Assembly (NCBI GenBank): GCA_025558095.1
Contig: JAIVFI010000019.1
Location: 1 to 64,000, forward strand
Length of the DNA stretch: 64,000 nt
DNA from: Hyaloraphidium curvatum SAG 235-1
Taxonomy: Eukaryota; Fungi; Monoblepharomycota
Reading direction: 5' to 3'
The notes under the pieces were generated by a model. It had not been told where the DNA came from, made no database searches, and saw only the letters and a list, made by a program, of their open reading frames with translations. Position 1 is the first letter of the stretch. The number at the start of each line of letters is the position of its first letter. Below are positions 17,726 through 56,604 of this stretch, piece by piece. The position numbers were made by a program, and so were the translations under genes.

Positions 17726-19388
17726 ATGAACGACACCGAAAGTAACCCCGCCGCCGCCGCCGAAACCGATGGCGGGGCGCGGGGAGCCCCAGCCTCGTCT
17801 GCCTCCCAAGACGCGGCCGGCGCACGGGACACCGACTTCACGCCCGAAGAATGGGCGTGCCTCTTTCCCGGCGGGACTCAGCCGTTCCGACCACTCCTGC
17901 CCGACGAGGAATCCGGGGATTCGGGGCGCGAACCCGCCGAAGAGTTCCGCAAGGCGCACCCCGTGACGGTCGAAACCATGCTGGCGGAGTTCGACGACCC
18001 GGTTCTCCGTTTCTTTGCCTTCCTCGGAGCCTCCCGGAGCGCGAGCTTCCTAGGGTGGAGGAACGCGGCGCAGATGGCCCTATCGTACACCATGGCGTTG
18101 GCCTTCCTAGCGCTGGCCTGGACGTGGAACGACGGCCGCTTCGGGACCAAGGAGATGGCAGCGGGCATAGCTTCCCTGGCGCTCATTTCTCTCGCGGCTA
18201 CTTGCACTGTCGTGCTCGTTGCGGTCGGCATGCCGAGGGTGCCAAAGGTGCTGGATTTCGCCCCACCGGCTGTACTCTGCAGGTGGCTGCAGCTGGCGAG
18301 GGAATCGGACCGGGGATTGCGGAAGCCCGGCGATCCGCCCGGAGGAGCACACCGTCTCGTCGGACACGAAGAGGGCGACCGGTTCTGCCCTTGTCCCGCC
18401 TGCGTCGGCAGTGTGCAGCGGCTTGCGGCCGGCATGACCTTCCTGGACGTCGTTCCCCTTTTCCTGATGCTTTTTTGTTCCCGGTGGACCGCAGGGTGGA
18501 CCACTTCGGTAACGTTTGGTTCCAGACTGTGGTCCACATGGTGGGGCCGCGTTCTCGGAGCAGTTTACAGTTGGTGGCCGATCGAATTGTCTTGGTAGCG
18601 CAGAAGTGCTTACCGACTCGCCTTGCGTCTGCAGTCTGTGGCGCTCTGGCTTCTTTCATGAACTCCTGCTCGCGGTTCGTCGGCGTGACCAACGCGGCGT
18701 ATGCCAAGCTCGAAGCGAGGCTGCACCACCGGGCCGTCGCGCTCTCGATGAGAGCGATGCTGCGATCCGTGCTCGGCGGCCGCCCGGTCGGCCAGGGCCC
18801 GTGGCTGTACGTGCGACTGCACCGCAGCTTCGCGTCTTGGTGCAAGATGCGTGAGATGCAGGACCAAACTTTGCTCAGCAACGCCGTGTTCGTCATAATA
18901 TTTCCGCTGACGGTCATCGCCATCATTGTTAATGTTGTAAGTAAGCCCGCGGACGGAGGATCGGGCATCTCGCGTGCTGACGCCGCTGCCGTCGCCAGGG
19001 CGCTGGGTCCTGCATCCCAGCGTGGCTCCTGTTCGGCGTCTGCCAGTTCATAGTGTACATGATCGTCAACACCGTCAACCTTGCCTCGCGCAACAACCTC
19101 ATCTCCGTCGTCGCATCGGCGTACCACGACGCCCAGCGGGACCTCCGGACCGCATGCCTCAGGCTCGGGCCGACCCCGCTCGCCGCCGCGCTGGAGCAGC
19201 ACGACCGGGTCATCGGCTCGTTTCTCGAGGTGTCGCGGTACAGCGCCAAGATCCTGGGGTTCACCGTCACGTACGGCGGTGTGCGAACGATGCTCGTGAC
19301 ACTGGTCACCCTCACGGTGGCCCTGTGGAGCGTGTTCCGGTCCCTGGGAGTGTTCTTCACCTTGGAGAGCTTCTGTCCCGTTGTGTAA
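17726..19388 (+). CDS. 7-TM membrane protein, gustatory-receptor/DUF3537-like family, copy 1 (511 aa)
   Basis: Introns 18570-18634 and 18937-18998 give an open 1536-nt CDS with seven hydrophobic segments. C-terminus SFLEVSRYSAKILGFTVTYGGVRTMLVTLVTLTVALWSVFRSLGVFFTLESFCPVV; paralogous to 27031 and 55099. Confidence 0.75.
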
Positions 19389-19764
19389 TGGGGGTTGAGC
19401 CCGCGAATGGAAGATAGCCTGCTCGTTATCCGAGCTCGAGGCTTCGAAGGCCAGTTGGCGACAATGGGTGGCGGCACGGCAGGAACCAGAATCGTCGCTG
19501 GCGTGGGTTGGGATCGCCCTCACCGTCGCGGTCCCGGCGGTCTCGGAGTCCCATTTCCTCGCTCCGTTTCCATTCGGGCACGGAAGTAAGACGAAAGAAC
19601 TGCATTCACCATTGTCGAAGACATCGAACGCTTTTTCACCAGCTGGCTCCAACTTTTTCGCGCGCCCGGCGCAAGACGTCTCCCGCGTTCACCTCCATCC
19701 GTTCCTGCCCGCCCGTCCCGCCCCCCCGGGATCGCCCCCATAACATCACCCTCCGCAAAGGGCT

Positions 19765-21254
19765 TCACGACCGGCCCCCCATCAGCAGCGCCTCCAGCTC
19801 CCCCACCCTCCCCCTCAGCATCTCGTTCTCCCCCTCCAGCTCCGCCACCCTCCCCTCGAGCCACCCGACGTGCTCCCTGCGCCTCTCCCTGCTCCTGCGC
19901 GCGGCGGCGGTGTTGCGCGAGCGCTTGGAGAGGATGTGCTCGACGCACTGCTGCCTCTGCTGCGGGGACAGCGAGGCGGGGGGGAGGGAGAAGAGGAGGT
20001 GCGAGGCGGTGGAGAGGACCTTGGGGGCGATCTGGTCCTCCGCCGAGGCGGGGCCGCGGGGCTTGCCGCCGGCGGGCTTGCGGGCGCGCTTCCTGCGCGG
20101 CCCGGCGTCCGAGTCCGAGTCCGGGTCGGAGGAAGGGGTGGGCGAGCGCGCGGGGCGGCGGCTGGCCTTGCGCTTCGGGCGTCTGGCGGAGGGGCCGGAG
20201 GAGGGGGGGGCGGGGGATTCGGGGGAGGAGAGGGCGTCCATGTCGTCGTCCTGGTCGGCGGGGGTGTCGGGGGCCTGGGAGGCGAAGCCGAGGAGGATGG
20301 GGGCGACGGAACCGCCGCTGTGGTCGCTGCGCGGGGTGGAGATCTTGGGCGTGCCCTGCGCGTTGCTGTCGGCGGGGGAGTCGGGCTGCGGGGGGCCCGG
20401 GTAGGGAGCGGAGAATGCCGAGGCGGAGAAGGCCGAGGCGGGGAAGAGCCACGCGGCGCCCTTGAACGCCGAGGGGTCGAAGGTGGCTTCGCCGACGAGG
20501 CGCGAGTCCGAGACGGCGCGCGGGACGCCAAAGTCCGGCGCGATGCCGAAGGCCGGCTGCACGGGGGCGACGGCGTCGAGCGAGCGCGCGGCGCGGGTGC
20601 GGAAGCTGGCGCCCTGCTGCGCGTCGAACGGCAGGCCGGCGGCAAAGGGCAGCGGCATGCCGGCCAGCGGGGGGAAGAGGGGGACGGAGGCGGCGTAGGG
20701 CTCGGCAAAGGCGATGGTGCCCGAGGGGACGAAGCCTGCCGGGGGGCGGGGGACACGTCATGTCAGCGGGTGCCGGAGAAAAGCCAATAGGGGGCCTTTG
20801 ACCCACCGGAGTCCATTGTGTCGCTGCGCACGTGCATGCCGGGCTCCGTGAAGGGCGGCAGGCGGGCGTCTGCGCGGAAGAGCGGGTCGATGAAGTCGTC
20901 GTTTGCGCCGGCGGGGTCGTCGCAGTAGTCGACGAACAGCTCGGTGGAGGCGAGGCGGAAGGGCGCCAGTGAGTCTGCGCGGAAGGAGGGCGCGGCGGAG
21001 GCGGCGGGGGCGTCGGGGAGGGCGGGCGGGCGGGGGGCGTCGGCGAGGTGTGCGGCGGCGGCCCCCCCCGCCGGCGGCGGCGCGGCGGGCTCGGCAATCC
21101 CCGGCGCGGGCGCGGGCATCCCGGCGGAGTGCGGCTCGGCGGCGTGCGCGGCGGGGGGCGTCCCGGCGGCCGGGGCGGAGTGGGCGACTTGGCGGGCGGC
21201 GGGGCGGCGGGCGGCGCGGGGCGGCGGCGGCGGCGCCATCGCGGCGGCGAGCAT
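19765..21254 (-). CDS. bZIP transcription factor, Gcn4/CpcA-like, ~472 aa
   Basis: C-terminal basic region KRSRNTAAARRSRERR plus zipper VGWLEGRVAELEGENEMLRGRVGELEALL; intron 20736-20806. Confidence 0.85.
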
Positions 21255-24200
21255 TCTCGGAGGCGGTTCGGGTAGGAAGTCGGGGTTGCTGCGATTCGAT
21301 TCAAGCAAACGTCCCGAGTGTTTTGGACTTGGCGGTGCCGGTGCCTGGACTCTCCTCAGCCCCCTGCCGATCGCGGTGCGGCAAGCGACGTCACTTTCAC
21401 TCGCTCCCCGGGGCTCTACACGCCGCCGCCACGCACGGCCCTCACCCGCGAACGCGTCCCGCCCCACAGGCCGCAGCTAGCTCCCCCGGGCCTGCGTTAC
21501 CGCGGATGCCTGGGGGCTTCCAAGGAACGGACCCTAGGCACGCTGATTAAGCTCCTCACTCCGACCCTCTCCTCACGTGCTTCCCCGCCCAGCACCGCGG
21601 GCGCCGTCGTTCGGCCCCGTCGGCCCGCGCTCCACCCATCAATCACTTGCGCCCGCCACCGCCCGTGCCTCCGACGCCGCGGCCGACAGGCCCGCGTCCG
21701 CTTCCCCGCCCGCCCGGGGCCGGCCGACCGCCGGACCGCCCCCCCGATTCCCTGTCCGCGGCCGCCGGGACCGCGCCGCCGCCCGCGTCCGCGTCTCCAC
21801 AGCTCGCCGCGCCGTCCCCGACACCCCCCGCCGCCTCCCATCCATCGCCGCCCCGCCCCGAGGGATGCTTCGCCACACGCCTCCCATCGCCCGGATCCAG
21901 GCCCCGAACCTCCGTTGCAGCCGATCCACCCTGTCCTCCCTCCTTCCGCGCAGCAATCCGCCCCGTCGTTCCGTCGGTGATCGGCGCGATGTCCCGGGTG
22001 GCGCGCGGGAGGTCCGATCCGCCCGTCCCGCACGGCCGGCGGCCGGTGGCCGGTCCAGGGGGGCCTTGCGGCCCTGAGGCGGCGCGGGGAAGCGGACGGG
22101 GTCCTGGACTTCAAGATCGAGGCGGGATCGCGGCATCGGGCGGAACAGGGTGCGCGTGTCGGGGCAGGGTGGCAGAGGGGGAAGGAGGGGCGTCGGACCT
22201 TCTTGGTGCGTCGGAGGGATTCGGGATGCTGGTATTGCCCGCGCGGGGTCGGGGTCCTCGGCACGTACCTACGCGATCCGCGCGGAATCGAACGCCCGAT
22301 GCCGCGGCGGCGAAGCCCAAACTTCCCGCCGCGACCATCCCCGTGCGCTCCGTCTCGTGTCGATACTTGCCGTGCTGTTCTCCGTCCATACGCACCGGAT
22401 TTCCCTTTTTGGATGGCGATTCGGACTCGCGTCCGGGCTTCCCGTGAGACGGGAACCGTCGACCGCCTCGGAAGCCACGGGCCAGGTCATCGATCGAACA
22501 CCCGCACCCATCACTGCCCCTTAGCTCGCACCCTGCGCAAGACAGGAAGATGGCTACGAGGCGGCGGAGAGCTCCCGGTGTCGCCGGGAGTGATTCGCTG
22601 CCAGCGCGCCGCCGGCGCCCCGTCCTTACGCGACGGCGCACGAAGGATACGCCGCGCCGGCGGCGCCGCGGCTTCCGCCCCCGGTTCCGCGTGTTCGCGT
22701 GGGGGACGGAACTGTGCAGTGGACGCGGGAGGAAGACCGTGGGGGACCGAGCCGCCGCGGGTGCCGCTGCGACGCTCCGGACGCGTCCGAAGCGCAGCGT
22801 TACGTTTCCCGTTGGGGGAGCGGTCTACCTGTCACGACGATGGACAACCTTGTGTTCATGCAGGGCGCCGCACACGCATGGAATAGCTGTCCGCGTTTCG
22901 GACGCCGGGCGCGGGAGGAAGCACATGTGCAGGACAGGGCCGCCACGGGTTCGTCCGGTGGCGCTCCCGACCCGCATCGGGAGCACTCGGAAAGAGCCGC
23001 AGCGGCATCGGTCTACCTACCGCGCCCTGTGATCTCGCATGGCGCTGCATGGTCCATTCGAACGGAGGCGCGCGTCGGACGGCGAGACGCTGCCGATCGC
23101 TGTCGGTAGTTCTCTCCCAATCCGGCCCGCGCCGCCCTTTGGCCGCGCGCAAGCGACGAGGGCTTGGAACCTGCGCAAAGACATTTTGCGCTGCAACCGG
23201 GGGGGAAGCCAGACACAAGAGGAACCTCGGGGAGCACAAAGCCGGCGCGTGGACCACGCGCGCTCGCGACCGCCGGCATGCTGGACGGACCGACCGTTTC
23301 CACTCCGTTTGCAGATGTGGGAGCCGGCATTCCGCAGCGACGCTCTGGTCCCTTCTGTGTACGGGACTAGGGGTTTCGAGGGGATGCCGGCGCCTACGGG
23401 GGCCATCGAAAGGGCTGCTGTGCGGGGGGCGGGGGGGCCGGTGCTGCGGGACCGGTCCTCTCCGGGCGCGCATTAATCTCGCATTGGAAGTGGTCCTGGA
23501 TCCTCCCGGCCTTTGCCATGTATACAGTAAGTGCCCGACAGTCGGCTTTGGCCGGCGGAAGTGCTACCCTCGCTCCCGGTTCGTGCCGGGCGTGAGGCGT
23601 ATAGCCACTCTCCGCCGGCACGCCGGCCGCCGCAGGCAGCAAGTGACTGCTCCGCGGCATTAAAGGCACCGGCGCAGTATCCCCGGTAATGGACAGTGCG
23701 GACCCGGAAGCCGGGAATGTGGCATCCACAGGGCGAGTCGGCCGGATGTGCCCCAACGCACCGGACCCGTGGGGTCCGGTATGTCGGGCGCCACCGGGCC
23801 GGCATCTCCACGGGTAGTACGCGGGATGAGGGACCTCTCGAAGGGCATGTGGTAAAGCGGCCCTCCTCGATGCGGCGGCCGCAGCTCCGGGCCGCAAAGA
23901 GCGGGATCGAACAGTCCCCGCCCGCCGACAACCCGGTTACCGTCGCCCGCGAAAGCACAGGCCGGTCTGGGCCGGGGCGTCGGCGAGGCGGAACGCGATC
24001 GCATCGCCCGCACAGCCACGCCCTACCAAAACCCCTGCACCGCCCGCGGCCCGCCCGATCCCCTGTCGCGTCCGGCGCCGTTGCGGGTGGCCGCGGACGG
24101 CCGCCGCCGCCGGACCGAATTTCTTGGTCGCCATCCACGGAATTCCGACCGAGTACGAGCGGCCACCGGCGGACGGGATGTTTGCCATAGGGCTGCCCCC

Positions 24201-25022
24201 GCCACGATCCGATTGGACCGTGCTGAGCTCCCCCGACCTCAAACCAGCGCTCGCCCGGGGAATCCGATCGCGACCCGCGGAATATCTAAGGAAGATGCTG
24301 CGTCCCCAACCCCTGTCCGTCAGGGTTTGAGGGACGTCGGTCTGGGCCTGCCGAGGCGCGTTTTCTGAGGTATGGGGGACAGGGACATCCTCGTACGCGG
24401 CGAGCATCGGAAAGGCCGTGCTGGTCGATTTCAAACAACGCCGGCTCCGCAGCCGCTCGCCCACCTCGACGGCTTCCGCGATCACCATCGGGGACCCGCA
24501 AGGTGCATCCGGGTCTGCGGGTCGAATGCCGACCAGTCGGCCGCGTCCCCTCGCCGACAGGGGACGTGGCCGACAGGGCCGCGTCCTTCCTACTCACCCC
24601 GGGGAAGTGGTGGAGTGCGGCTGGCGGTGCATTTGCGGTGGCCGCAGGGGCCGCATCGTTGCTGCGGCGGCCTGGCCCGGCCGTTCAGGGCATTGCGTTC
24701 CCGAATGGCGACTTTGGGGGCGGCGGGGATCCGAGCGAAAATGCGATCGGACGCATTGGAGAGCGGAAGAAGGCCCGGGAGAGGTCGGTTGAGGTTGGCA
24801 TTGGGCTTGCTGATGCATGGTAGCCGCGGTGCTGGGCCATCTGGGCGGGACGATCGAGGCGGGCGGGGACCCTGAGCGGGGGACCTCGTCGGGCGGTCGG
24901 CCGAGCGGTCGGGATGAGCGACCCTGGCGGCCGATCAGCTCCGAAAACTATCGGCATTCGGGGACGACGCCAGTCGACATCGGACGAGAGCGGAACGCCG
25001 GCACACCTTTCAGTACCGAGAA

Positions 25023-26830: not shown

Positions 26831-27030
26831 AACAGCGCTGCACCGTCGGTGGTCGTCCCCCTCCCAGCTCCGGCAAGTGACGAGCAATCGTTGCAAGGTC
26901 GGGGAGCTGATCGGATCTGCATCTTTTTGGCAAATCGAGCGAGCATTCTGGGATAGAATGGTCCCCGTACGTCCAACTGTTGCCCAGGTCGATCACCCTT
27001 CTGGAGGCCCGACCCCGGCGTTGGGCCGCC

Positions 27031-28616
27031 ATGGCGTCCTCGCTCCCGAAACCCGCCTCGCTGACAGAGCACGAGTGGCTGGCCCTTTTCCCGCGGCCGG
27101 CGGCGGGAGGAACGGGTCCAGCGTGGGCCGGGACGCCGCCGGACCCGGCAGCCGCCCTGAGGATTTCCGACCCGCTGACCGCCTCGGCGCTCCTCGCCGA
27201 GCTCCCGCCGGCGCTGCGCCTTCTGACGCGTGCCCAGCTGGCCGTGTGGCCGCTCGGGAGGCTCGCCGGCGTGCTGCAGTGGCTGTACAACCTCGCGACC
27301 ATCGGTGTCCTGGCATCGGTCTGGCCGCTGAACGACGGGCGGTTCGGGAACGCGCAGATCGCCGCCGGATTCGGCGCAGCCCTCGCGGGCAATCGCCATG
27401 TTCTTTGTGGTGCCCCTCCTGGGCTCGACACAGGGTGCATTTACCGGCACGGTCGAAAGCGCGGGCGGGAACGACATGGGGGGACACTATCTCGCCGGGT
27501 TCGCCCGGTGGAAGCAGCTGCTACGGACCCGGGGCACCGTTGTGGGACCTGACTCCGAGACGGGAAAGGGCGACGGGGCAGCAGCTTCTCCGCTCGTGGC
27601 CCACGTCGACAAGGACCCGCTGTGCCCCTGCGACCGCGCGTCGTGCGCCGGCGGTATCGCCCGAAGAGCAGGCATCCAGCAGGTGGTGAAGCTGGCCGCG
27701 ACTTTCCTGGTGTGGTTCTCGTGGTTCGTCCTCCTCCGGTGGACCCCGTTCGTCACTTTCGCGGAAGGCTTCTGGACGACCTGGTGGTCGGCATTGCTCG
27801 GCGCTCTCTGCGGTGAGCTATTGAGCAACGACATGGGAACCTCAATTGACGTATCTCGCTCGTCATCGCACTACGCGTACCCCAGTGCTCACTCTCCTTT
27901 TCAATTTCGGTCCCAAGGCCATCAGCACCATGTCGACATGTTCCGCTCTCCTCGGCCTCCCCCGGCGCCTGGGCATGCGCGCCGCCAACATCGCATTCAC
28001 CTCCTTCTTCGAACGCTTTGGCCTCGCCCTCGAGGGCGCCGTCCCCGAAGCCGACCTCCCGTCGCTGCTCGCCGGCCGGGAGCTCTACGTGGACCTGCAC
28101 CACCAAACCGCCGCCGCGCTCCCCTGGGGCATCGGCGTGCCGATAGTCGGCGGTCCCCTCGCCTTCCTCTCCCTGGCAGGCTTCGCCCTCTGGGCCACCG
28201 CCAACGTCGCCGCGGGCTCGTGCATCCCGCTCGCCTACATCGTCTTCCTCCTCTGGGCCGCGTGCTTCTTCCTCGTGGACCTGTCGCTGACCGCGGTGCA
28301 CAACCGCTCCATCGACGACCTGGCGGGGTCGTACCGCGACGCGCGGCAGCGCATCAGGCTGATGCTCGCCTCGGCCGCGCTGCGGAGACCGCCGCCCCCG
28401 GCCGAGATCGTGGATGCCCTGCGCGCCCACGACGCCGTGCTAGAATCGTTCCTGGGCTTGGAGAGATACCGCGCGGGGCTGTTTGGGTTCCCGGTATCGT
28501 TCGCGCTGCTAAGGACGCTGGTGGTGACCGCGGCCACGGTGGTCGTGGGGCTGTGGGGCATCCTCAGGGGCCTGGGGGTGTTCGTGACGGTCGAGACGTA
28601 CTGCCCGAACCGATGA
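27031..28616 (+). CDS. 7-TM gustatory-receptor/DUF3537-like family, copy 2; carries a +1 frameshift (recent pseudogene or sequence error)
   Basis: Removing one G at 27387-27389 joins ...AALA to [11 protein letters not shown]. Intron 27813-27885; ends ...[50 protein letters not shown]. Confidence 0.72.
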
Positions 28617-28687
28617 TCCGCGCTTCCGCAATAGACGTCTGTGACAGCTCGTCTTTTTCTGATAGAGCGACATACAGCGCCCACTGC

Positions 28688-31411
28688 CTACAGCTTCGCC
28701 TGGCTCTGCAGGATCCCGCCCAGCTTGGTCGCCATCATCAGGTTGCCCTTGACCTTGAGCTTCCCGCTCATAAACATGCTCTGGGCGTTGGCCTTGCCCG
28801 TCACTAGGCCCACCATGTCGTCGTCCGAGAGCACGAGCGTGACGTCGGCCTTGCCCGGCGCCGGGCCCATGCCGACGGCGCCGAGACCGTTCTTGAGGTC
28901 GATGTGGTACGTGGCCTTTTCCTTGGCCGCGTTGGTCACGTCGAACTGGAAGATGCCCTTGACCTTTGCCACGCGCTTCTTGCGCTCGTCCTCGCTGCCG
29001 GACTCGAGGCCTATCCATCCACCGATCAGCAAATGGTCCAGAGCAAGCACCAAGTAGTAGCTCACCCTTCTTGATGCCCTCGAACAGCTTGGCGCTCTTG
29101 AACTGCCCGCCCTGCGCCGCCCCCGCGACCGCCGGCTTCGCCTGCCCGGCCGCCGCCTGCGCCTGCGCGTGGGCAAATGCCCGCATCGACGACTCCTGCA
29201 GCGTCGACGGGTACAGCGCGCCGTCCCAGTTGGTGATGTCCGCGAACCGCGCGCGGATGTCCTCGGGGGTGAGCTTGCGGTCCCGCGGGAAGCCGACGCC
29301 CTTGGTCTGCTCCCAGCGGAGGCTCGAGACCCAGCCAGCGCCGACCTCGAAGATGCCCTTCGTGACCTTGCAGTCCTCCGACCCGAGGAACACGACGAGG
29401 GGAGCGACGTAGTCGGGCTTCAAAGCCTCGACGGCCTCGGGGGGCATGACCGTCGCGGTCAGGCGGGTGCCGGCGTTGGGGGCAATGGTGTTGCAGAGGA
29501 TGTTAGCCTTGGCGCCCTCGATGGCGATCGAGTTGGAGAAGCCGACAGTGCCGAGCTTGGCGGCTGAAAGCGGCCGTCAGCTCCCACAGAAGAGAAGATG
29601 GGCAGACCAACCCACCAGAGTAATTGGCCTGGCCGAAGTTGCCGTAGAGACCGACCGCCGACGCCGTGTTGATGATGCGGCCGTACTGTGGGAGGGCAGC
29701 CTTGAAATCAGCTCCGTGTACCAGATTTACTGGCGGTCGTCCTCCCACCTTCTGGTTCTGCATGTGCGGCCACGCGGCCTTGGTCACCTTGTAGATGCCG
29801 CGGAGGTGGACCTTGTGGATCAAGTCCCAGTCCTGGTCGGTCATGCGCTGGAACGACTTGTCGCGCAGGATGCCGGCGTTGTTCACGACCACGTCGATGC
29901 GGCCAAAGGCCTTGATCGCCGTGTCCACGAGCTTGTCGCCGTCCTCGACCGAGTCGTAGTTCGCGACGGCCTGGCCGCCGAGGGCCTTGATCTCCTCGAC
30001 GACCTTGTCGGCGGGGTGGGTGCCCTTCTCCTTCTCGTCCTCGCCGAAGCGGCCGCCGCCGAGGTCGTTGACTAGAGGTGGGTGTGAGCCTCGATCACTA
30101 GCCTTCTGCTAGGAAGAGCTCACCAACAACCTTGGCACCAGCCTTGGCAAACGCAAGGGCGTAGGCGCGCCCAAGTCCGTTACCAGCACCAGTAACCAGA
30201 ACGACGCGGTCCTTGAGCGACACGGCGGCCTCACGGCCGGGCTTGTTGGCCGGCAAGGCCGCGGCGGCCTTGAGGTTGCCGAACCAGTCCACCTCCGAGA
30301 TCAGGCGCGGGTGCTCGGCGTTCTTGTAGTCCATAATCTGGCCGATCTTGTCGCGCACGTCGGCAGCCACGAAGCCGGCGTCGGTCTTGAAGATCACGCC
30401 CTTGCTCCGCTCCCAGCGGTCCTCGGCGACCCAGCCCGCGCCGGCCTCAAACAGGCGACCCGACACCTTGGAGTCGAGCTCTTTCGACGAAAGGAAGGCA
30501 ACAAGGGGAACAATGAAGTCGGGGCTCAGGAGTTTGAGGGCCTCGGCGGGGGTGACCGTCTCCGTGAGGCGGGAAGCGGCCAGCGGGGCAATGGTGTTGG
30601 CGAGGATGTTGTTCTTCGCGCCTTCACGGGCGAGGGTGAGGGTAAAGCCGTGGAGGGCGAGCTTGGCAGCTAAATGGAGGGGAAATGAGTGAGCCAGAAG
30701 TTGGCGGACGAGAACTGGAGGAACACGAACCCGAGTAGTTGACCTGGCCGAAGTTGCCATAGATGCCGGCGGCCGAGGCAGTGTTAATGATCCGGCCGTA
30801 CTTCTGGGCCTGCATGATGGGCCAGGCAGCCTGTCGAGAGCGGCATTGCCAGAGAGATCAGGATCCGGAATTTATCCAGCTCTCGCCTCGCCCGACCTTT
30901 GTGACCTTGTACGACCCCCTCACGTGGACCTTGTGGATCAGGTCCCAGTCCTCGTCCGTCATACGCTGGAACGACTTGTCCCTGAGAATGCCGGCGTTGT
31001 TCACGAGCACGTCGACTCGTCCGTAGGCCTTCATGGCCGTCTCGACGATCTTGTCTCCGTCCTCCACCGAGTCGTAGTTGGGCACGGCCTTGCCGCCGGC
31101 CTTGATGATCTCCTCCACCACGGCATCGGCGGCACGGGTTGAAGCGCCCTGGCCGGAGAACGACCCGCCGAGGTCGTTCACAACAACGTTCTGCAGAGGT
31201 CCGGGGCACGACCGAATGTCAACCAGAGCACTTGAGAGCCTCCGATGAGCGACGCACCGCGCCCCTGCTGGCGAAGAAGAGCGCATAGGCCTTCCCCAAC
31301 CCTCCGCCAGAACCTGTGACGATGACCGTCTGCAGGGCACGTTAGCCCCGGAGGGGACAAGGAAGGACGGCAGAAACGCGCCTGGCCAGCAAATGAAATC
31401 TCGCTGGACAT
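28688..31411 (-). CDS. FOX2: Peroxisomal FOX2/MFE-2-like protein, copy A: SDR-SDR-SCP2, no hydratase domain, PTS1 -AKL
   Basis: Eight introns (the first, 31330-31381, is GC-AG). Two SDR domains ([34 protein letters not shown], YGNFGQxNYSAAK), then SCP2 ([10 protein letters not shown]...[25 protein letters not shown]); ends QAKL. Confidence 0.9.
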
Positions 31412-37771: not shown

Positions 37772-39823
37772 TCACACGTTCCCCTCGGCATCCAGCACCC
37801 CCGCCGTCGCGCACATCCCCTCGAACCGCGGCACCCCCCCCACCCTTGCCCGCACCCGTTCCGGCATCGCCCCCGCGCCGACCTCTGCCATCAACGACGG
37901 CGGAACCAAGCCAGGGGCGCGCACCCCGGCTAGGTCCAAGGGGCTGGCGAAGATCCTCGTGCGCGGAAGGGCGGCGGCCAGCCGCCCGAGAAGCGCCCTG
38001 CGATCCCTGAGCGCGTCCCCCGCGGCGGACGCCATGGACGCAAGAGCATTCATCTCCTCATCCGGCCCGGCGGGTTGCCATCCGTAGGTGAGCGCGGCAT
38101 CGGACAGCCTCGGCGAGACCGTTGCCCCGGGGAACCCGGAGACCGACAACCCCCCGATCCCGGCGCCCAGATCCAGAGACACCAGCTGCCCCGGCCCCGG
38201 CCCCATCCTCTGGCTCGGCGACGGCCCGCCGGTCGGGTGCATGGCGGCGAGGAGGAGCGTCGGATCGAGGTATCGCAGCGCGGGGCAGGCCTGGGCAAGC
38301 AGCTCCTCGGGCGGCTGCGACCTCCCGATGTACACCGCAGGTCCCGGAGGGCGCGGGGCGTACCCCGGTCCGAACGAGAACGCGGGGCGTTGCTCGGAGG
38401 GCGGCCGCGTGCCGGCGGCCAGGTCGAGCACCACCAGGCCGGGCGGCAGCGCGGAGATGACGGCGGCGATGGCTACGGGGTACCCGCCGCGGTGGATGAA
38501 CTGCCGCACCGCGTCGTTGCCCCTGAACGCCGCGTGGCAACCCTCCAAGCAGAGCGCCGCGAGGTTGGGCAGCGCAGCCAGCACGGGCGGGAGTACCACC
38601 GCGTCCGCGGCATCCTGGTTGGACAAGTCCAGAACCACCAGCCCGCGCAGCCTGCCCAGCATCGACAGCGCGCGTACGTCCATCGGCCCCATGCCCACGA
38701 GCGCACGGGGAATCATCCCGGGGATCCGTGCGCCGGGGGCGCCGAGGTCCAGCCGGCGCAGGGATTGGCCCGCGGGGGACGAAGCCAGCGCGTGGATGCC
38801 CTCGGGGGTGGTCCAGCTCCCCCCAGCGGACCCGACGCACAGGGTGGCCAGGTGCGGGCATCCCCGCCCGAGGGCCTCGATGCCCACCGGGGAGACGGAG
38901 CAGTAGCCCGAGGAGACGCGGAGGTGCCTCAGCTCCGCGCACGAGCCGGGAGACGCGATCTCGAACAGCATCTGGTCCGAGAAGGGGCCGTCGCGGACGT
39001 GCAGGGAGAGGAGATTGCGGAATGGGCGCAGGTCCAGCGGTTCGGGGGCGATCCGGTGGCGGACACGCACGGTCGACAGGCCGTCGATCGATTCCAGCAC
39101 CGGTCCGGCGTCCCCGTGGGCGGCCGACTGCGCCTGCGCGAGAGCCTGCAAGGCGGACGGGCTGACGGCCTCGAAGGCGCCCGAGTCGAGCTCGTCGTCG
39201 CCAGCCGCCCGCGTCCCGAAGTTGACCTTGAGCAGGCCCGTGAAACGGGAGAACCAGTGCCGCAAAAACCGCCGCGGGTCTACGTCGATGTGCAGCGGCT
39301 GCCTGTTGGACACCAGGTGGGGGAGGGATATGGATTCGAGGCGGCCGGCGTCGATGTGGGAGAGCACCTCGCCGGCGAGCACGAGGAAGGCCGGGAGGTC
39401 CGCCGCTGCCGAGCTGAACGCCGCGGGCCGCGCCCTGCAGGCGGAGAAGTCGATGCTGCGCACGTGCAGCCCCGTGTCGGGCCCGGTGTCGCGCTCCTGC
39501 GCGTCGCGCATCTCCTTCAGCGTCCGCGCCAATAGGGCGAGCCGCCTCCCCGCCCGCCAGGAGACGTCAAACTCGGCCTTTGCCGCCTGCGCCGCGCCAT
39601 GCTGCCCGCCCAAGTCGAGGGAAACGCGTTCCGGGGCGGGCAGGTCGGAGTCCGGCGAGGTCGCAACGGCGATGTTCGCGTAGAGCAGGTCGCGCGCCGC
39701 GGCCGCCCACGTGCGGCTGACGAGCGACGGCGCGTGCAGCGCGTGGCCGCGGACACCGCCGTCGTCCGGCAGCCCGCGGAGGTGCCGCAGGATCGGCAGG
39801 ACGAGCTCGACAGGGAGGGACAT
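37772..39823 (-). CDS. F-box / leucine-rich-repeat (RNI-like) protein, intronless
   Basis: MSLPVELVLPILRHL...LVSRTWAAAARDLLY F-box, then LRRs (CPHLATLCV, SLRRLDLG, LVVLDLSN, LPNLAALCLEGC). Confidence 0.8.
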   Translation of the reverse strand: MSLPVELVLPILRHLRGLPDDGGVRGHALHAPSLVSRTWAAAARDLLYANIAVATSPDSDLPAPERVSLDLGGQHGAAQAAKAEFDVSWRAGRRLALLARTLKEMRDAQERDTGPDTGLHVRSIDFSACRARPAAFSSAAADLPAFLVLAGEVLSHIDAGRLESISLPHLVSNRQPLHIDVDPRRFLRHWFSRFTGLLKVNFGTRAAGDDELDSGAFEAVSPSALQALAQAQSAAHGDAGPVLESIDGLSTVRVRHRIAPEPLDLRPFRNLLSLHVRDGPFSDQMLFEIASPGSCAELRHLRVSSGYCSVSPVGIEALGRGCPHLATLCVGSAGGSWTTPEGIHALASSPAGQSLRRLDLGAPGARIPGMIPRALVGMGPMDVRALSMLGRLRGLVVLDLSNQDAADAVVLPPVLAALPNLAALCLEGCHAAFRGNDAVRQFIHRGGYPVAIAAVISALPPGLVVLDLAAGTRPPSEQRPAFSFGPGYAPRPPGPAVYIGRSQPPEELLAQACPALRYLDPTLLLAAMHPTGGPSPSQRMGPGPGQLVSLDLGAGIGGLSVSGFPGATVSPRLSDAALTYGWQPAGPDEEMNALASMASAAGDALRDRRALLGRLAAALPRTRIFASPLDLAGVRAPGLVPPSLMAEVGAGAMPERVRARVGGVPRFEGMCATAGVLDAEGNV

Positions 39824-40344
39824 TTGGTTCTCGCGTACTCCGTTGGACTCCGCGGGTCTTCGCGGCACCGGTTCGCAAAACACCGGTCAAGATATTGCAA
39901 TGCCGCCAGATGGATGCAATGAGCTCTTACTTCCCTAGCTTGATGGATCCATCAATGCCGCGCATGAAAAAGGAAGACGGTGCCGTTGTGCGACGATGAA
40001 CGGTGAAGAAGAACGGCCTTTGGACACCTTAAAGCCACGATTCCGTCTTCGCAACCCTCGTTCCGCATCTTCGGAGGGATCGGAATGTCAGAGGCGCCGC
40101 ATGCGTCAGCGGCGCCGCGGGTGCGTGCGTCGGAAGCTCCTAACCCCACACTGACGCGTCCGCCAGCATACCCCGCGGATTAAAATCAGATGTCGAACGA
40201 CCGTCCACGACGTCGCCGGCCCTCGACACGTAGAAGCAGTTGAATGGTGATCTGAAGGACACTTCGCCGCTTGCCCGAGGCTTCTGCGACTCCTGCCTTT
40301 TGAGAGCCCGCGCCACCGCCAACCAACAACCAACCGGCAACGGG

Positions 40345-41331: not shown

Positions 41332-41506
41332 GCGTCGGTCCCGCGCTGCCCTGCCGCAACACTGCAGGGTCGTGCGTCAGTCAAATCCCACTTTTTCCAA
41401 TATGCATTGGTCATCAGATCCTATGGACGGTCAAATCCTCTTTGCCAGTTCCCATGCCATAAATCAGATGAAGACAGGAGAGAGAGTGCGAGAGAGAGGT
41501 ACATAG

Positions 41507-43807
41507 CTAGTAGTACCCCCACACCCCGCCGTTCCCGATGTTCGCGGAAACATGCAGCGCCTCCGTCCCGCAGACCCTCAACCCCAGCTTCCGCGCGTAA
41601 TCCACGACGTAGCGCTCGAGATCGTACATCCCCGCCCCTCCCGCCCCCTCGAGCACGCCAAGATCCACGCCGCGGAACAGGTCCGCGAAGTGCCGCCCCC
41701 GCATGGCGAACAGGAACGTGAGCAGCATGTCGCCGCCCGGCCGCAGCACGTGCAGCTTCTCGCGGTCGAGGTACCAGCTCCCGAACGTCCGCGCCCACAC
41801 GTCGCATTCCGGGTGGGACGCGACGAACCGCAGGAAATCCGGGCGCGCGAGGCGGTACCGCCCGCTGAGCTTGACCACGATCGCGTCGGGCGCATCGAGG
41901 GCCGCCGCCGCCGGCTCGGGGGACGCCAGGAACCTGTTCAGCGCGAAGGCCTCCCGCGCCCCCTTGTTCCGCAGGGTGGCGGGCACGTCCGGCACGCAAA
42001 CCGCGCGGGTGAACGGGAACCGACGCGGCAGCTCCCATCCGCAGGTGGGGTCCTCCGAATACACGGCGAAAGAGCGGGAGAAAAGGGGCAGCGCGAACTC
42101 GAGGGCGGTACGGTACTCCTCCTCGCGGGTCGAAGCGAGCTCGGCGAGGACGGATTCGTTGTAGTGCACGACCAGCGATGTGTCCGAGGGGGCCGCCATC
42201 GTGGCTAGGAGGATGAAGTTTTGGGAAAGGCGGAAGGCACCCGCATCGAGCCCCCGGGAGTCGACCTGTTCCGGGTAGGTTGGAGCCGTCCGCGGCCGCC
42301 GGCGGTCCTCGTCCATGCCGGATCCCGCTTGCCCTTGTGGATGAATCCCCGTTTGCGGCGATATGGCTTCCGTTCCGATTTCGTGCCGCCTGACTTGAGC
42401 GCTTCCCATCTCCAAGAAATGCGCAAACGTCTTCGTCACAGCCCAGTCAACGTAGTTTCCACCGTACTGCTTCACCGCGTGCTCCTGCGAGCGATGCGCG
42501 AGCTCCTTCCGGAACGCTTCATCCTCGGCGAGCAGGCACATGTGCCCGGCGATCTCCTCCACCTCTTGCTTGGAGCTCGGAATGTCCGGGTGCACCGAGT
42601 GGAGCAGCGCGTACGTCCCATTGGGCGTTCCGGCTCCCAGCATGTCGAGCGTGCCGCCGACGCCCGACGCCAGCGCGGGCAGCCCGGCAAAGAGGGCTTC
42701 GAGCAAGGCAAGGCCCCACGACTCGCCGTCCGCCTGCGCGTTGCTAACGAAAACATCCGCGGCTGCCAGGTAGGCCGGGACCTCGGGGGGAGGGACCCCG
42801 CCCCGCAGGACGAACTGCGGGTGCGTGAGGGTCCACCGAGTTTGCTGGTCGGGGAACACTCCCCGCACGGGCTTCTCCGCTGCCATGTGGGAACCGAGCG
42901 CGAGGATGCGGATGCGTGGGTGGGCGGCAGGGCAAAGGTAGCGCGTGCGGTTGAAGGCGTGGGCGACGCCGGCGTGGCCCTTGTACCAATGGAAGTAGGA
43001 CAGCATCATGAATACCACGGCGTCGGAAGGCAGGCCGAGGGCGGAGCGGATGCGCTCCCGCTGGGCGGTGTTGCCCCGCGCTTCGAGGAGGGGCTTGGCG
43101 CGCCAAGGCGGCATGCCCCAAGGCAGCGTCAGGCTGTGTGGGAGCCGCTTCAAAGCTCGGGGGCCGAGCTCGCCGGCGAGATAGGCGATAAAGCTGGCGC
43201 GTGCGGATGGAGAGATGAAAATGATGCTAGTGACGGTTCCCCCTGTTGCTGCTTCAAAGACTTTGAGGCGGTGTTTGGTGTGCCAGTGGCGGAAGAGTGT
43301 CCCGCCCTCGTGAACCCAGAAGACGACGGCTTGATTGGGGCGGCGAGTGTAGGAAAGAAGGAAGTCGACCGAGGCGGGGGCCGTGGTCGACACGACGACG
43401 ATCTGCGCCTGGGACGCGACTTCGGCCGGGTCCCCCGCATAGAAGCCGATGCGCTCCGCCGCGGTCCCTTCGAACGCCCCTATGACGGTCGCCCTGAACC
43501 GCGCCTCCAGCCGATCCGCGGCCGACGCGCCCTCGGGCTCGCCCTCCGCGGGCTCCAGCTGCCTGGGCGGCACGTGCAGCGCAACCCGTGCGCCGCGCCG
43601 CGCCAGGATCGCCGCGAGCTCGGCGCACACCCGCGGCGCGCCGGTGGCCGTCATCTCGTGCGAGAGGATCGCGATGCGCACGCCGCGCAGTGGTCCGTCG
43701 GGGGCCGCGGGGGCGGCGGCCGGGGGCGGTGCGGGGCCCGGCCGCAGCGGGCCGAACGCCGCCATGGCGAGTGCCGCGACCAGCGCGGTCCGGAGCCGCA
43801 GGCCCAT
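41507..43807 (-). CDS. GT4 (GT-B) glycosyltransferase fused to a second uncharacterised C-terminal domain, intronless
   Basis: Signal anchor, ILSHEMTATGAP, FWVHE, YKGH, AADVFVSN and ESWGLALLEALFAGLPALASGVGG (EX7E). Separate C-terminal domain with NKGARE and IVVKLSGRY. Confidence 0.85.
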   Translation of the reverse strand: MGLRLRTALVAALAMAAFGPLRPGPAPPPAAAPAAPDGPLRGVRIAILSHEMTATGAPRVCAELAAILARRGARVALHVPPRQLEPAEGEPEGASAADRLEARFRATVIGAFEGTAAERIGFYAGDPAEVASQAQIVVVSTTAPASVDFLLSYTRRPNQAVVFWVHEGGTLFRHWHTKHRLKVFEAATGGTVTSIIFISPSARASFIAYLAGELGPRALKRLPHSLTLPWGMPPWRAKPLLEARGNTAQRERIRSALGLPSDAVVFMMLSYFHWYKGHAGVAHAFNRTRYLCPAAHPRIRILALGSHMAAEKPVRGVFPDQQTRWTLTHPQFVLRGGVPPPEVPAYLAAADVFVSNAQADGESWGLALLEALFAGLPALASGVGGTLDMLGAGTPNGTYALLHSVHPDIPSSKQEVEEIAGHMCLLAEDEAFRKELAHRSQEHAVKQYGGNYVDWAVTKTFAHFLEMGSAQVRRHEIGTEAISPQTGIHPQGQAGSGMDEDRRRPRTAPTYPEQVDSRGLDAGAFRLSQNFILLATMAAPSDTSLVVHYNESVLAELASTREEEYRTALEFALPLFSRSFAVYSEDPTCGWELPRRFPFTRAVCVPDVPATLRNKGAREAFALNRFLASPEPAAAALDAPDAIVVKLSGRYRLARPDFLRFVASHPECDVWARTFGSWYLDREKLHVLRPGGDMLLTFLFAMRGRHFADLFRGVDLGVLEGAGGAGMYDLERYVVDYARKLGLRVCGTEALHVSANIGNGGVWGYY

Positions 43808-50689: not shown

Positions 50690-52878
50690 CTGCGTTGGGC
50701 TGCGGGGAAGGGTCAGCGTCGGGCGTCCCGGCAGCACCACGAGGCCCGGCACGCAGGTCCTACGGCTTGCCGGAGCCGCAGAAAATCCGCCCCGGCCGCC
50801 CGTGTCGCCCCAAACAGCACCTTCAGTCAGCCTTTGAGGGGGGCAAAAGGGCGCGGCGTCGTTTCGGTGTCGGCCCTGCGGGGCATACCAGGCGTCCTGC
50901 GCGGCGGCAAAACGACGGGCGGTTAGAACAAGCCCAGTAATGCCAATAGGCGCCCCAGAATGGCCCGGCCGTTGCCGGGGACGGCGGTGCCCCACGCCGC
51001 CCCCCGCGTCCCGCGCCGCCGGCCGCCCCCCGCGCCGGGCGCCCTGCGCCGCCGCCACGCCGCCGCATGCGCCTCTGCCCGCACCCTCCGCGCCGCAACC
51101 CCGCCGCGGCATCCCCCGCGCCGCCCGCCGGCCCGCCCGTCCCGGTCCCCCGCAGACTCCACCGGCCGCCCCGCCGCCCTCTCAACCCGCCCCGGTCTCG
51201 CTCCGCCGTCAACTCCTCCGCAAAACCCCAGCCAGCCAGCCCGCAACATCCCGGCGTGCTTACCTCGCTCGCAAGGGGGCGGGGGTCGGGGTGTCGCGTG
51301 CGTTTTGCCGGCGCATCTGACCGCTCAACGGCTGGAGGGCGCGCCCGGGACCCGGTCGGCGCCGCACAAATAGGCACGATATGCCACGGAGAACGGGGAA
51401 AGAGGGAGCGGAAAAGATGGATAGGGAGGTGATTGGTTTGCTGGGCGTTAATGGTGGGGATTGGAGGCAGATGGGGCCGTGGAAGGAGATGGAGTGATGC
51501 GGCGCCAGTTCAACAAGGCCCCGCGCTCCGGTTTCCTGTCCAGGGAGCTCTATCGTACATCATTTGCGGCAATCTAACAAGAGCGGTGCCGTCGATCGGG
51601 GGAGGGAGGGTCTCTGGGCACGGGTGGTTGCCCTTGCCACATTGGCCCCGCCGGGGGATCGGCGCCGCCGACTTTGCGTCCGGGCATCCGGCAGCAGGTC
51701 CATTGGACCCGGTCGCTCTGCTATCCGAAACGGATCTGTTCACTTCACCGAAGCGGGCCGTTGTGGGCGTGGTGATGGCCGCCGCTAATCGAAAGCCTTC
51801 GAGCGCATCCGATCTGTTCGATGACTTGATGGGAGCCCACTTTAGTCTCTATCTTCTCGTTCTCGCCCCCGGTTTAGTTCGGCTCCGGGTCCGAGAACGA
51901 GTCGAGATACGGAACGACGCTGAAGGCGTTCAATGGGTCGCGGAGGTGGACGGTCCGCGAGGTGGCGGTCGTGGCTGGGGTATTCAAAAAGTACGGCTTC
52001 AAGGTCAAGCACGCGGCCAAGGACTCGGCGCTGATCTTCCGGGCGCAGTGAATGATTTGGAGCGGGATTTTGTCACAGACTTGTTCTTTGTTCCTGAGGA
52101 AGAAGAGAATGTATTTGTTCAAGTACTTGTTCTCCCCGTCGGAGTCAGTACATCTTTTGGATAGCCGGGGCTTGCGGTCCCCGTCCAGTCCAGTTCCTTT
52201 CCGCTCTGAAAATGAACTGAACATTGCCGAGGAGAGGCCAGCTTTAAAAGACATGGATGATGGCTCTGGGTTGCTACCGAAGCGGCTCTCGGCATCGCAG
52301 GGAGCTGGTGAGGCCCACGGATGGCGTCGGGGTTGCAAGCTATGAGCAACGAAGCCGGCACCGCCCGGAGCATGCTGCTGGCGACGCCCCGCTCACCCGA
52401 GCCAGAGGCAGAGGGGGGGTTGGACGAGGGGACTGTCCTCCGTCGCTTCGCTCCGTCGTCCCCCCGGGGTCGCGGCGAACAGCGCCCGAATCCTCGATGC
52501 GCGTGCAAGCCAGAAGCACCTCTTTTAGCATGATCCATTTACGAGGACGATTGCGGCGCAGGTATGGCTCGCTGGTCTGAAGGCATGGCTGTAGCGTTGA
52601 GTAATGGCCGAGTATTGCCTTTTGCCGGCAAGACTCGACTATTTACTTTGACGGGGTGAGGAAACAGGGAGAGCACCAAGGTCCCACATTGGAGCCGTCT
52701 TTCGGCCAGTTCGACACGTTGCGCGACTGAAGTATCGGGGTGACGGTGGCAAAGCTTGGCGGTGCAGGAGTTGTTGCAGGAATCGGCACAGCCCGCGTTC
52801 CGAAGAACCTTCGCGGAGGCAGCGACGTAATTGTTCTCTCTGCTCAACAACTACTCAGCTTCGTTTCCACCGTCTAGA

Positions 52879-54361
52879 ATGGGAATGGCTGCTCCGGGCC
52901 CGCTCCGCCCCTTCAAGCGCTCGCCCCGTGCCGGAACCGTCGGAGCCCTGTTGTTGGCTGCCGCGTGCGCCTTCCTGCTCGCCGCCGCGGCCCCGACCGC
53001 AGCCGCACAGTCTGTGACCGGCTACATCAACTTCCCCGGCCCGGGCCGGTCGAATCCCGCGAACCCTGCCGCGAACAGCCTCTGCATCCCGCAAACGGCC
53101 GTCAACCTGCCCGCGCTCGGCGTGTACGATGTAACCCTCACGGGCTACTGGTGAGATTTCGTGGACCCCGGAACCTACTTTCGGCGACCCTCACATTTGC
53201 GGTCCGTTCTAGGATGAACGGAGGGCGGTTCCCGCGCGACGCGGCGTTTGTCGGTCGATGTCCCGGAAACACCGCCGCATCGGGTCCCATTTTCGACAGG
53301 TGCGGGACTTGATTCGAAAAGCTGTCTGCCGCCGCTTGATAGCCCATCCTGTAGCGTGCACAACTTCTACGGCTACTTCCGCTGCAACGTCAACGGCGCG
53401 ACCGGCGGGACTCCCGATCTTCTCGAGTGGGTCAAGCTAGCCGAGAGCGCCGCCGCTGGAACCGTATTCGTCAACGTCGGTACTCTCCGGATCCATCCCG
53501 ATCGTGCCTTACAAGTCCTTTCAACAGGGCCAGTTCGTCGACTGGGGTTCCACATACAGCCCGGTGCAAACCTACACCAAGAGGCTGACCTTCACCACGT
53601 CGCCGGTGCTCCTCGGCGTGCGCGACACGCTATGCGAGGACAATATCGACAACGTCACGACGGTGGACCCCAATATCCGAGCTCAGGCGTTCGGCGCGCC
53701 GGGTATCGCCTTCTCCTTCTCTTTGGTGGCCACCGCGGTGGGATGCCGGAGTATCGTTGCATGACGTGTGATCCTCTCGCTCACAAGCGTGTTCTACCAG
53801 ACGGCCACCGCGACGACAACCACCAGCCAGAGCACCGCAACCGCCAGCGAGACGCCGACGCCTAGCACGACCAGCGAGACGCCGACCACCACGAGCGAAA
53901 CGCAGACGTCGAGCACCACAAGCCAGACCTCCTCGGTAAGGCTGCAGCTTCCGCTGCGCAGGATGGCTCGGTGTGATCGTGTTTTCCATGACCAGACGAC
54001 ATCGAAGACCACGAGCGAGACGCCCACATCGACGAGCGAGACGCAGACCCCGAGCACCACCAGCGAAACCCAAACGCCTAGCACAACCACCCAGACCTCT
54101 TCGGTAAGGCGCCCGCCTCCGTCCTAAGCGTTACTTGTGCGATCACCTGTCCTCTCCTCCCAGAATACGGCGGCTCCGACTAGGACAACATCCCGATCGG
54201 CGACGCGCACGCGGACCGCGAGCCGCACCCGCACGACGACGATCAGGTGCAGCCGGCGCAACGGCAGGGGGAAGTGCCGAGGAAGCGGCAAGGAGGATGA
54301 GGACAAGGATGACAAGGACGACAAGGAGAAGGACGACGACGATGATGGAAAGGACGATTAA
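52879..54361 (+). CDS. Secreted protein: Cys-containing beta-rich domain, Ser/Thr-rich stalk, basic then acidic tail
   Basis: Signal sequence LLLAAACAFLLAAAAPTAAAQ; about six GT-AG introns link the pieces; SETPT/SETQT repeats; ends EDEDKDDKDDKEKDDDDDGKDD. Confidence 0.7.
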
Positions 54362-55098
54362 GCCCCAAGCCCATGGTGTTCGGCGACCGGTAGCGAAAAG
54401 GCGGCGGCCGCCCATTCATGACTTTCTAGGACACAAAGCGCATTAGAGAGGAGCTGGAATTCGCTTCATTCGTTGCGCTCTACGTGATCGTTATTGAACA
54501 TTGCAGCATGATGCCTGAAGATCCGCGCCCTGCTGCAACCTGTCATCGCATGCCATCCATATTCTGGATGATCACGACAGGTCTTACGTCCTTCGTGTGG
54601 CTTCATGTATCTCGGAGTCGGAAAATCAGAGCGGCCTAAACGAGGGGATGACCTGGCAGTGGTGATCTGGCCGTTGGCGGAAGCCGCCTCTCCGAATACA
54701 AAAAGCGCCCGGTCTCCTGAGGCCGGCGGCCTCCTGCCCGCTCCAGACACGTCACGAGGCCTAGGCCGACCCGGGTCTGGACCCTCGCCGCATTTGCAGA
54801 AACGCTTGTTTGCAGAATTGGGGCCCCGGCGGGGCTCCAACCACGGCTCGCCCTTGGGCCCTTTCGGGTCGGCGCGATGAGACGGCGCGTCCGCGGCTGT
54901 CCGCAACGACGGCCGCGGCCACCCACGCGCGGGCTCCCGCGTCATCGGTTGCGGCCAACGGGCGGGAGGCCGTCAGGTGCCCTGAAGCTGGGTTGGCCTC
55001 CGGTGGGCCCGTCCGGTCTCGGACGTTTCATGCGCTCCAAAAAGGAAAGCAAACGAAAGAATTGCGCCGAAACGACAGGGCAGAGGCAATGGTCCCAT

Positions 55099-56604
55099 CT
55101 AGAACAATGGACACACGCTCTCCATCGTCACGCGCACCCCCGCGGCCCTCAGGACGCTCCAGAGTCCTAGCAGCACCGTGATCCAGCTTGCCGCGATCCC
55201 ACGCACCGTCCCGTACCCAACCGTGATGCCGAGCACGCGGCGGCGGTACCGCGCCGACTGCTCCAGGAACAGGCCCAGCACGGCGTCGTGCGCTGCGATC
55301 TCGCCTCGGAGCGAGGGGGACGCGGCGCCGGGGTCCGCCGGTGCGGCAAGCATGCGGAGGGAGGCCTGCGCGGAAACGTAGAGGTCCGTGATGGCGTCGA
55401 TCTGCAGGTTGGACTCGGCGATGTAGACAAGCTCGAAGAGGAAGTAGACCGTGAGGCAGCCCATGGCCAGCAACTGCCACAAAGCTACGCAGTTTCCGAC
55501 GGCAACGTTCAGGATGAAGGAGGCCGCGATGGCGATGAGCTGCAGTGGTGCTACGATCTGAACCATGTCCGTGGTTCCGAACCGGGAGATCCAAGCCTGT
55601 ATAAGCGTGCGGTGCAGGGTCTGATATTGCCAATACAATTCCATGGCCGGTTTTTCCTCGGAGTTTGCCTGGTCTGGTTCGCGCAGCCGGTCCCGCAGCT
55701 GTCGCAACGAAGCAGCCATCGCCCGACGTTGAAGCCTGCCACGAAAGCGGGCCATGGGCACGGTGTTCACCACCCCGACCCGGGACACGTCTGAGGTGAT
55801 GCCGGCCGCGAGTAGGGCCAGGAGGAACAACGTGCCGAAAGCGGCGCTCCACGGTGTGCTCCAGAATCTTGGGGCTAGCGAGAACCACATGGGAGTTGAG
55901 AATGCCGCAAGTTGCGCCGGAAAAACCGTCGCCAGGAGCATGACAAAGTCCAGGATCAGCCAGCGGAGGTTGCGGCGCGAAATTCGGCCGCAGCAGGACT
56001 CGCGCGGGCATGGGCAGCGCTTGTCGCCCGGGTCGTGGTACGTCAGAACGACGTTGTCGGATTCCCCAGTCGAAGAGACCGACTTGCACAAAAGGCGCCA
56101 CTGCAGGAACCCATAAGCATTGGCAAAGGCCAAGAGACGCGTCGGGTTGGCGCGAACGGCTGCTGCTTCGCCAGCGCCGATTTTGAACCTTCCGATGCGG
56201 GAGTGCAAATTGAACGACACGGGTCGTGTCAGCAGGTAGAGGAAGATGGCAGTGTATCCGACGCCCAGCTGCGGCGCCGCGAATAGGGACGGCGGGGCGA
56301 GAAGGAGGGCTGCCGCCACGACGGGCACGGCCAGCGCGACCGACGCCAGGCCGAAGGCTCCGAGCCCCGTGGCGCCCAGCGCCGGCCACGTGTCGACCAG
56401 GAATTCGATGTACTTGGCGCGGATCCCCATGCCGGCGGCGCGCAGGAGGCGCGTGGTGCCGGCGTAGGACGAATCGTCGCCCACGCGGAGATCCGCTGCC
56501 GGGTCCACCGGCGCTTCGTCGACGGCGTATACCGAGGCGTCGAACACGGGCAGCATGGGGAAGAGCACGAGGAACTCGCGCGGCGTGAGGACGAGGGGAG
56601 GCAT
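55099..56604 (-). CDS. 7-TM gustatory-receptor/DUF3537-like family, copy 3 (501 aa), intronless
   Basis: ATG 56604 MPPLVLTPREFLVLFP. Shares CPC, FWST.W, YxxLH, GxC, NxxI and HDAVL with copies 1 and 2; ends RYRRRVLGITVGYGTVRGIAASWITVLLGLWSVLRAAGVRVTMESVCPLF. Confidence 0.75.
   Translation of the reverse strand: MPPLVLTPREFLVLFPMLPVFDASVYAVDEAPVDPAADLRVGDDSSYAGTTRLLRAAGMGIRAKYIEFLVDTWPALGATGLGAFGLASVALAVPVVAAALLLAPPSLFAAPQLGVGYTAIFLYLLTRPVSFNLHSRIGRFKIGAGEAAAVRANPTRLLAFANAYGFLQWRLLCKSVSSTGESDNVVLTYHDPGDKRCPCPRESCCGRISRRNLRWLILDFVMLLATVFPAQLAAFSTPMWFSLAPRFWSTPWSAAFGTLFLLALLAAGITSDVSRVGVVNTVPMARFRGRLQRRAMAASLRQLRDRLREPDQANSEEKPAMELYWQYQTLHRTLIQAWISRFGTTDMVQIVAPLQLIAIAASFILNVAVGNCVALWQLLAMGCLTVYFLFELVYIAESNLQIDAITDLYVSAQASLRMLAAPADPGAASPSLRGEIAAHDAVLGLFLEQSARYRRRVLGITVGYGTVRGIAASWITVLLGLWSVLRAAGVRVTMESVCPLF

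Follow-up and report, generated by a model that had tools for sequence, protein, structure and literature searches.

The window analyzed here, 64,000 nucleotides of Hyaloraphidium curvatum SAG 235-1 (contig JAIVFI010000019.1, positions 1 to 64,000), carries three homologous genes, g1 (17726-19388, + strand), g2 (27031-28616, +) and g3 (55099-56604, -), which share 28-33% pairwise identity (E 1e-35 to 1e-55) and represent a family with several hundred copies in this genome. With little doubt, the family is homologous to the seven-transmembrane ion channels (7TMICs), the superfamily of the insect odorant and gustatory receptors (ORs and GRs), and it is probably a large, lineage-specific 7TMIC family working like these receptors. 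By analogy with them, we also consider a ligand-gated channel function within a sensing repertoire to be reasonably likely. The fuller proposal, favored by a narrower margin of confidence, is that more than 450 ligand-gated 7TM ion-channel chemoreceptors, a repertoire of insect scale, arose independently in a lineage of unicellular, non-swimming fungi. These receptors, also present in an uncultured relative, would possess a gate design and a metal-binding module in the cytosol that are peculiar to them, and would be the first use of this fold as a receptor repertoire outside animals. The three genes and their homology had been proposed in a preliminary description of the sequence and were borne out, as were the ten motifs listed for them, which are present and collinear in g1, g2 and g3. 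The proteins were described as being of about 500 amino acids (aa), which holds for g1 (511 aa) and g3 (501 aa); g2 is frameshifted, a feature that had been overlooked.

Predicted structural relationship to 7TMICs

Two members were modelled confidently, g3 and P0068, an annotated paralogue from the clade of g1 (38% identical) that was used in place of g1. Both models match OR, GR or Orco structures first in every structure search, over the whole chain and in sequential order, as anticipated in the preliminary description. Seven hydropathy peaks are found family-wide and coincide with helices of both models, and long loops (67-82 aa, 8-10 lysine plus arginine residues) and short ones (4-14 aa, 0.1-1.0 such residues) succeed each other in alternation. 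The predicted topology places the N-terminus inside and the C-terminus outside, with intracellular loops exceeding the extracellular ones in length, as expected from the published 7TMIC criteria (bioRxiv 2023.08.30.555482), which do not require a re-entrant helix TM0 before the first transmembrane helix (TM1). In the g3 model, long TM4, TM5 and TM6 helices of the anchor type (residues 251-308, 326-370 and 375-420) are followed by a split TM7, formed by a helix at 430-452, two short strands near 456-461 and a second helix at 464-487, and the same arrangement is found in P0068. Hydropathy peaks, charge bias and models thus agree with the seven TMs, intracellular N-terminus and split TM7 initially proposed. 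By alignment, the g3 helices at 47-76 lie in the range matching the receptor N-termini and are a candidate for TM0. The absence of a signal peptide, also claimed before, agrees with hydropathy and the structure model, the two bases for this point. A G protein-coupled receptor topology was rejected in view of the charge bias and of the far lower structure scores of the corresponding entries.

Pfam and the PDB were searched with individual proteins, with complete alignments and with an alignment of the C-terminal part, in no case with a significant result. Neither individual proteins nor alignment members matched the Pfam families of GRs (PF08395), ORs or DUF3537 (PF12056) above the cut-off, and the PF12056 profile found no match in the genome in a search run without a positive control. 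The family very probably belongs to the 7TMIC superfamily but lies outside the GR, OR and DUF3537 families proper. Class-A may be a likelier affiliation than Class-B, the language-model and structure neighbors being Class-A-like; the first intracellular loop (IL1) has about 80 aa. The lack of a sequence link, together with a modest Z score and the many intronless copies, could instead be taken to indicate that the helical-bundle membrane fold is convergent and has no relationship to 7TMICs, or that the family was amplified selfishly and is devoid of function. We regard both as extremely unlikely, since the OR/GR match is sequential along the whole chain in two models, the genes are under purifying selection and g2 yields a spliced transcript; moreover, no transposon features came to light next to the genes, although no systematic search was made for them.

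The insect structures used for comparison (MhOR5 7LIC, AaegOR10/Orco 8V02, BmGr9 8VC1, Gr43a 8JM9 and Orco 6C70) resemble the family in predicted fold over about 300-340 residues, in topology, in the anchor helices and in the split TM7, and insect ORs and GRs also share with it a large repertoire, a conserved pore helix, variable TM1-6 and the occurrence of broken copies. In contrast, the family is only 6-10% identical to them, lacks the TYhhhhhQF motif and displays a TM2-TM3 loop of about 80 residues with a His-Cys3 cluster, an extra N-terminal helical region and a C-terminal tail with CP; furthermore, H. curvatum has no nervous system and no co-receptor was identified. Nearest by language-model features are the Class-A 7TMICs, namely animal GR-like proteins (GRLs), plant DUF3537 (PF12056), nematode DUF267 and chytrid SpunGRL1/SpalGRL1, from which the family differs in having no Pfam match; the closest predicted structures belong to unnamed animal clusters (TM score 0.65-0.70) presumed to be GRLs. 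Regarding Class-B, no PHTF cluster is present among the neighbors listed. PHTFs are few-copy conserved genes.

Conserved sites and putative pore

The most invariant residues of the family are H190, C197, C199 and C204 of g3 (H190..C197-x-C199..C204; 55993..56037, -), which lie in the cytosolic TM2-TM3 loop, are conserved in 100% of 135 sequences and follow the pattern H-x6-C-x-C-x(2-6)-C. This candidate metal site is probably a structural zinc site. Such invariance would also suit channels whose gate is controlled mainly from the cell interior, with redox state, metal or light acting on the His-Cys3 cluster and on conserved tryptophans, for which the nematode LITE-1 is a loose parallel. This mode of gating is, in our view, very unlikely, since an invariant site leaves more than 450 divergent pockets unexplained and a structural zinc site is the simpler reading. 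Two further cysteines that, like the cluster, are specific to the family, C372 in the third extracellular loop (EL3; 55489..55491, -; 100% conserved) and C498 in the C-terminal tail (55111-55113, -; 97-99% conserved), both lie beside a short strand in the model and probably form a disulfide, for which they are the candidate pair.

The putative pore helix, TM7b (residues 464-487 of g3; 55144..55215, -), bears a family-wide stripe of polar or small residues at positions 469, 473, 476, 480 and 483. The pore of BmGr9 is lined by T429, T436, I440, Q443 and F444 (PMC11100771), and the same spacing leads in the family to positions 469 (T in 54%), 476 (T in 98%), 480 (G/A), 483 (S/G/T) and 484 (V/I/L), a register inferred from spacing, the structural end-points scattering by up to one helical turn. 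On this register, the two rings of hydroxyls and the hydrophobic plug on the outer side would be kept, the inner gate would be small and the glutamine would be replaced by a small polar residue. At the site of the insect GR motif TYhhhhhQF the family consensus reads T-V-x-V-G-L-W-S-V, in which the threonine is kept (98%) and the Y, Q and F are not. Conserved arginines (468 and 486) flank TM7b and are compatible with either ion selectivity.

The altered gate motif, with G/A as the inner-gate equivalent, would also fit proteins of 7TMIC fold that are not ligand-gated channels but carry small solutes or lipids, form constitutive leak channels or serve as scaffolds in the membrane, as is possible for PHTF and DUF3537. 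In fact, an I440A substitution in BmGr9 raises the resting current (PMC11100771), the function of PHTF is unknown (PMC12635824) and TMEM39 is also found among the language-model neighbors. Nevertheless, such roles are unlikely in view of the conserved hydroxyl stripe of TM7b and of the combination of a conserved pore with variable pockets, and a scaffold role hardly explains why there should be hundreds of divergent members.

This combination is apparent in dN/dS, estimated by a simple counting method on a small sample of five independent paralogue pairs: the lowest values were those of the hairpin plus TM7b (0.09) and the tail (0.11), followed by the anchor (0.25) and the membrane portions of TM1-6 (0.44), with whole-gene values of 0.29-0.38 and no region above 0.6. 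The pattern is the one expected for a conserved pore with diversifying pockets, although membrane helices often tolerate change regardless.

Size and distribution of the family

Searches covered the genome of 31.9 Mb (55 contigs), and 60 loci were sampled in detail. Between 415 and 858 first-look candidates were obtained, essentially all of those scored being significant. A six-residue C-terminal DNA pattern displayed 182 exact matches versus 0 in the control, and a longer DNA pattern, with two mismatches allowed, 331 versus 8; upon calibration on 142 family proteins these correspond to about 480 and to 480-500 sites, respectively. Clusters from the profile search (50% identity) numbered 462 at E<=0.001, 410 at 1e-10 and 292 at 1e-30, counts which take in fragments and a few other organisms. 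About one-sixth of the sampled loci are frameshifted or partial. The family comprises about 450-500 loci in H. curvatum, perhaps 400 of them intact, and the large genome-wide repertoire postulated from the window alone is thereby confirmed. Identical-looking loci occur on large and small contigs (L035/L036, L047/L048 and L034/L054; contigs C17/C47 and C30/C48) and apparently stem from segmental duplication or from redundancy in the assembly, which raises the counts by a few percent. A word-indexed homologue search recovers only one or two of the hundreds of known paralogues, and its blanks are uninformative.

Median pairwise identity within the family is 27%, and the long tips and short internal branches of the family tree indicate that the expansion is old. 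Introns are mostly missing from the relatives of g3 (L001-L030), while those of g1 (L031-L060) have one or two in common, always at fixed positions; introns may have been lost, or genes retro-duplicated, in the course of the expansion. Among ten long members the only candidate domain fusion, a SIMPL/DUF541 domain (P0056 residues 574-783), was rejected as probably reflecting merged gene models.

Published counts of 7TMICs outside animals are one per Spizellomyces, six in Thecamonas or Vitrella and 4-12 in plants (PMC7746228), so that Class-A counts of 1-12 contrast with about 450-500 in H. curvatum; an expanded insect GR set numbers 197 (PMC12635824). In the literature searched, which mostly excludes subscription journals, neither a published non-animal repertoire this large nor a paper linking Hyaloraphidium to these receptors was found.

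Of 29 family proteins in the collection, 27 are "hypothetical" proteins of H. curvatum, and two clusters are metagenomic. The contig carrying P0151 has 54% GC (versus 59-76% in the window); the protein reaches at most 54% identity with any of the H. curvatum members scored, and its gene adjoins one for an SNF2-type helicase, the latter with an apparently interrupted frame; P0140, from the same JGI sample, has 59% GC and a best identity of 36%. Both keep the His-Cys3 motif, and the tree places them inside separate H. curvatum subclades (support 0.98 and 0.95), which implies that at least one other eukaryote carries the family and that the subfamilies diverged before the two lineages split. We infer that both contigs come from one organism, a fungus. 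The helicase neighbor of the metagenome member (L062:1412-2800) has its best match in H. curvatum at C45:86903-90498, where a family member is found within about 2 kb on the opposite side, an adjacency that could be due to chance at the given gene density. Scanning JGI metagenome contigs for a DNA pattern produced a single hit, discarded as chance (in-frame stops, no profile score); the scan is insensitive and also missed the real metagenome members.

Functional interpretation

H. curvatum has neither flagellum nor rhizoids and reproduces by 4-8 spores that resemble the mother cell in shape (PMC6899921). Due to the absence of a flagellum, zoospore chemotaxis cannot be the purpose of the family in the known life cycle. 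Carrying over the tetramer, gating and ligand steps from insect receptors, we hypothesize that four subunits, identical or mixed, would be joined via the cytosolic anchor with TM7b lining a central pore, that this pore would open once a small molecule binds between the TM helices, and that the resulting cation entry would signal to the cell. The hundreds of paralogues would constitute a broad chemical-surveillance repertoire evolving by birth and death, and, the known cells not swimming, its outputs would probably concern development or defense, comprising growth, spore release, dormancy and the response to other organisms.

A different use of channels with this fold would be as non-self or danger sensors, responding to parasite, bacterial or grazer molecules or mediating allorecognition, the ion flux possibly killing or arresting the cell. 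Host-parasite turnover would fit the very large number of copies, both scattered and clustered, the broken sixth and the variable TM1-6, and taste is less useful to a non-motile cell. However, the dN/dS values given above, the lack of fused death or NLR-type domains and the retention of subfamilies in two distant organisms make this role improbable. With regard to the chemoreceptor repertoire that we favor, the 7TMICs published from unicellular organisms and plants comprise 1-12 genes without a known function; a family of several hundred members with receptor-like selection, in a cultured strain and often with single-exon genes, allows a direct test of whether 7TMICs outside animals act as ligand-gated chemoreceptors. 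If true, the 7TMICs would have undergone a chemoreceptor-scale expansion outside animals and without neurons, pointing to an unrecognized sensory ecology in a poorly understood fungus.

Gene structures and neighboring genes

No family copy besides g1, g2 and g3 was found in the 64-kb window. The copies had been called unlinked, which is loose, as all of them lie on a single contig and the family tree unites g1 with g2 in one clade (support 0.93). The g3 gene, the structure-modelled member, is intact and consists of a single exon. For g1 (+), three exons are proposed: exon 1 (17726..18569) encodes the N-terminal helix motif, the re-entrant-helix candidate, TM1-TM3, the His-Cys3 loop and the start of TM4; exon 2 (18635..18936) the TM4 extension through TM5; and exon 3 (18999..19388) the EL3 cysteine, TM6, TM7a, the hairpin, TM7b and the C-terminal CP tail. 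Intron 1 (18570..18634, 65 nt) and intron 2 (18937..18998, 62 nt, at EL3), both GT..AG and at positions common to many paralogues, were deduced from homology rather than reads, because their removal restores collinearity with g3 and because introns of about 60 nt interrupt many paralogues at these two profile positions.

The g2 gene (+) has two exons. Exon 1 (27031..27812) holds the frame break, a +1 frame change within TM2 at approximately 27385..27395, followed downstream by a premature TGA (27550-27552); the intron (27813..27885, 73 nt, GT..AG) is spliced out in a public RNA contig, and exon 2 (27886..28616) covers TM4 to the C-terminus, giving a spliced length of 1513 nt (3n+1). The RNA contig and the assembly agree at every base around the break, and an assembly error is therefore unlikely. 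Thus, g2 is a transcribed, frameshifted copy in the strain sequenced; an intact allele may also exist, RNA contigs dropping rare variants. From the in-frame ATG at 27398 a 381-aa product would arise, devoid of TM1 and part of TM2, and the database protein for the locus is this same product (P0088, 100% identical). The transcript evidence concerns g2 alone among the three copies, and the depth of the RNA contig is uninformative on the level of g2 since it continues into a convergent gene. The latter (28688-29447, -) encodes an SCP2 sterol-carrier domain ending in AKL, resembling the tail of a peroxisomal multifunctional enzyme; its stop codon lies about 70 bp from that of g2 and, both genes being on one RNA contig, their 3' ends probably overlap. 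Head-to-head with g1, a GNAT acetyltransferase gene (17006-17551, -) has its start codon 174 bp from that of g1, and a shared promoter is possible.

Elsewhere in the window, a frame at 11115-12497 (-) matches the Pfam CsoSCA_cat domain, the catalytic domain of carboxysome-shell-type carbonic anhydrases, just over the cut-off (E 2e-6); the label is unusual for a fungus and the frame may encode a divergent beta-carbonic anhydrase. Further, ordinary neighbors encode a CC2D1-type DM14 domain (2913-5573, -), a fungal transcription-factor domain (5939-7576, +), a weak F-box-like match (37772-39883, -) and a family-1/4 glycosyltransferase (41507-43807, -).
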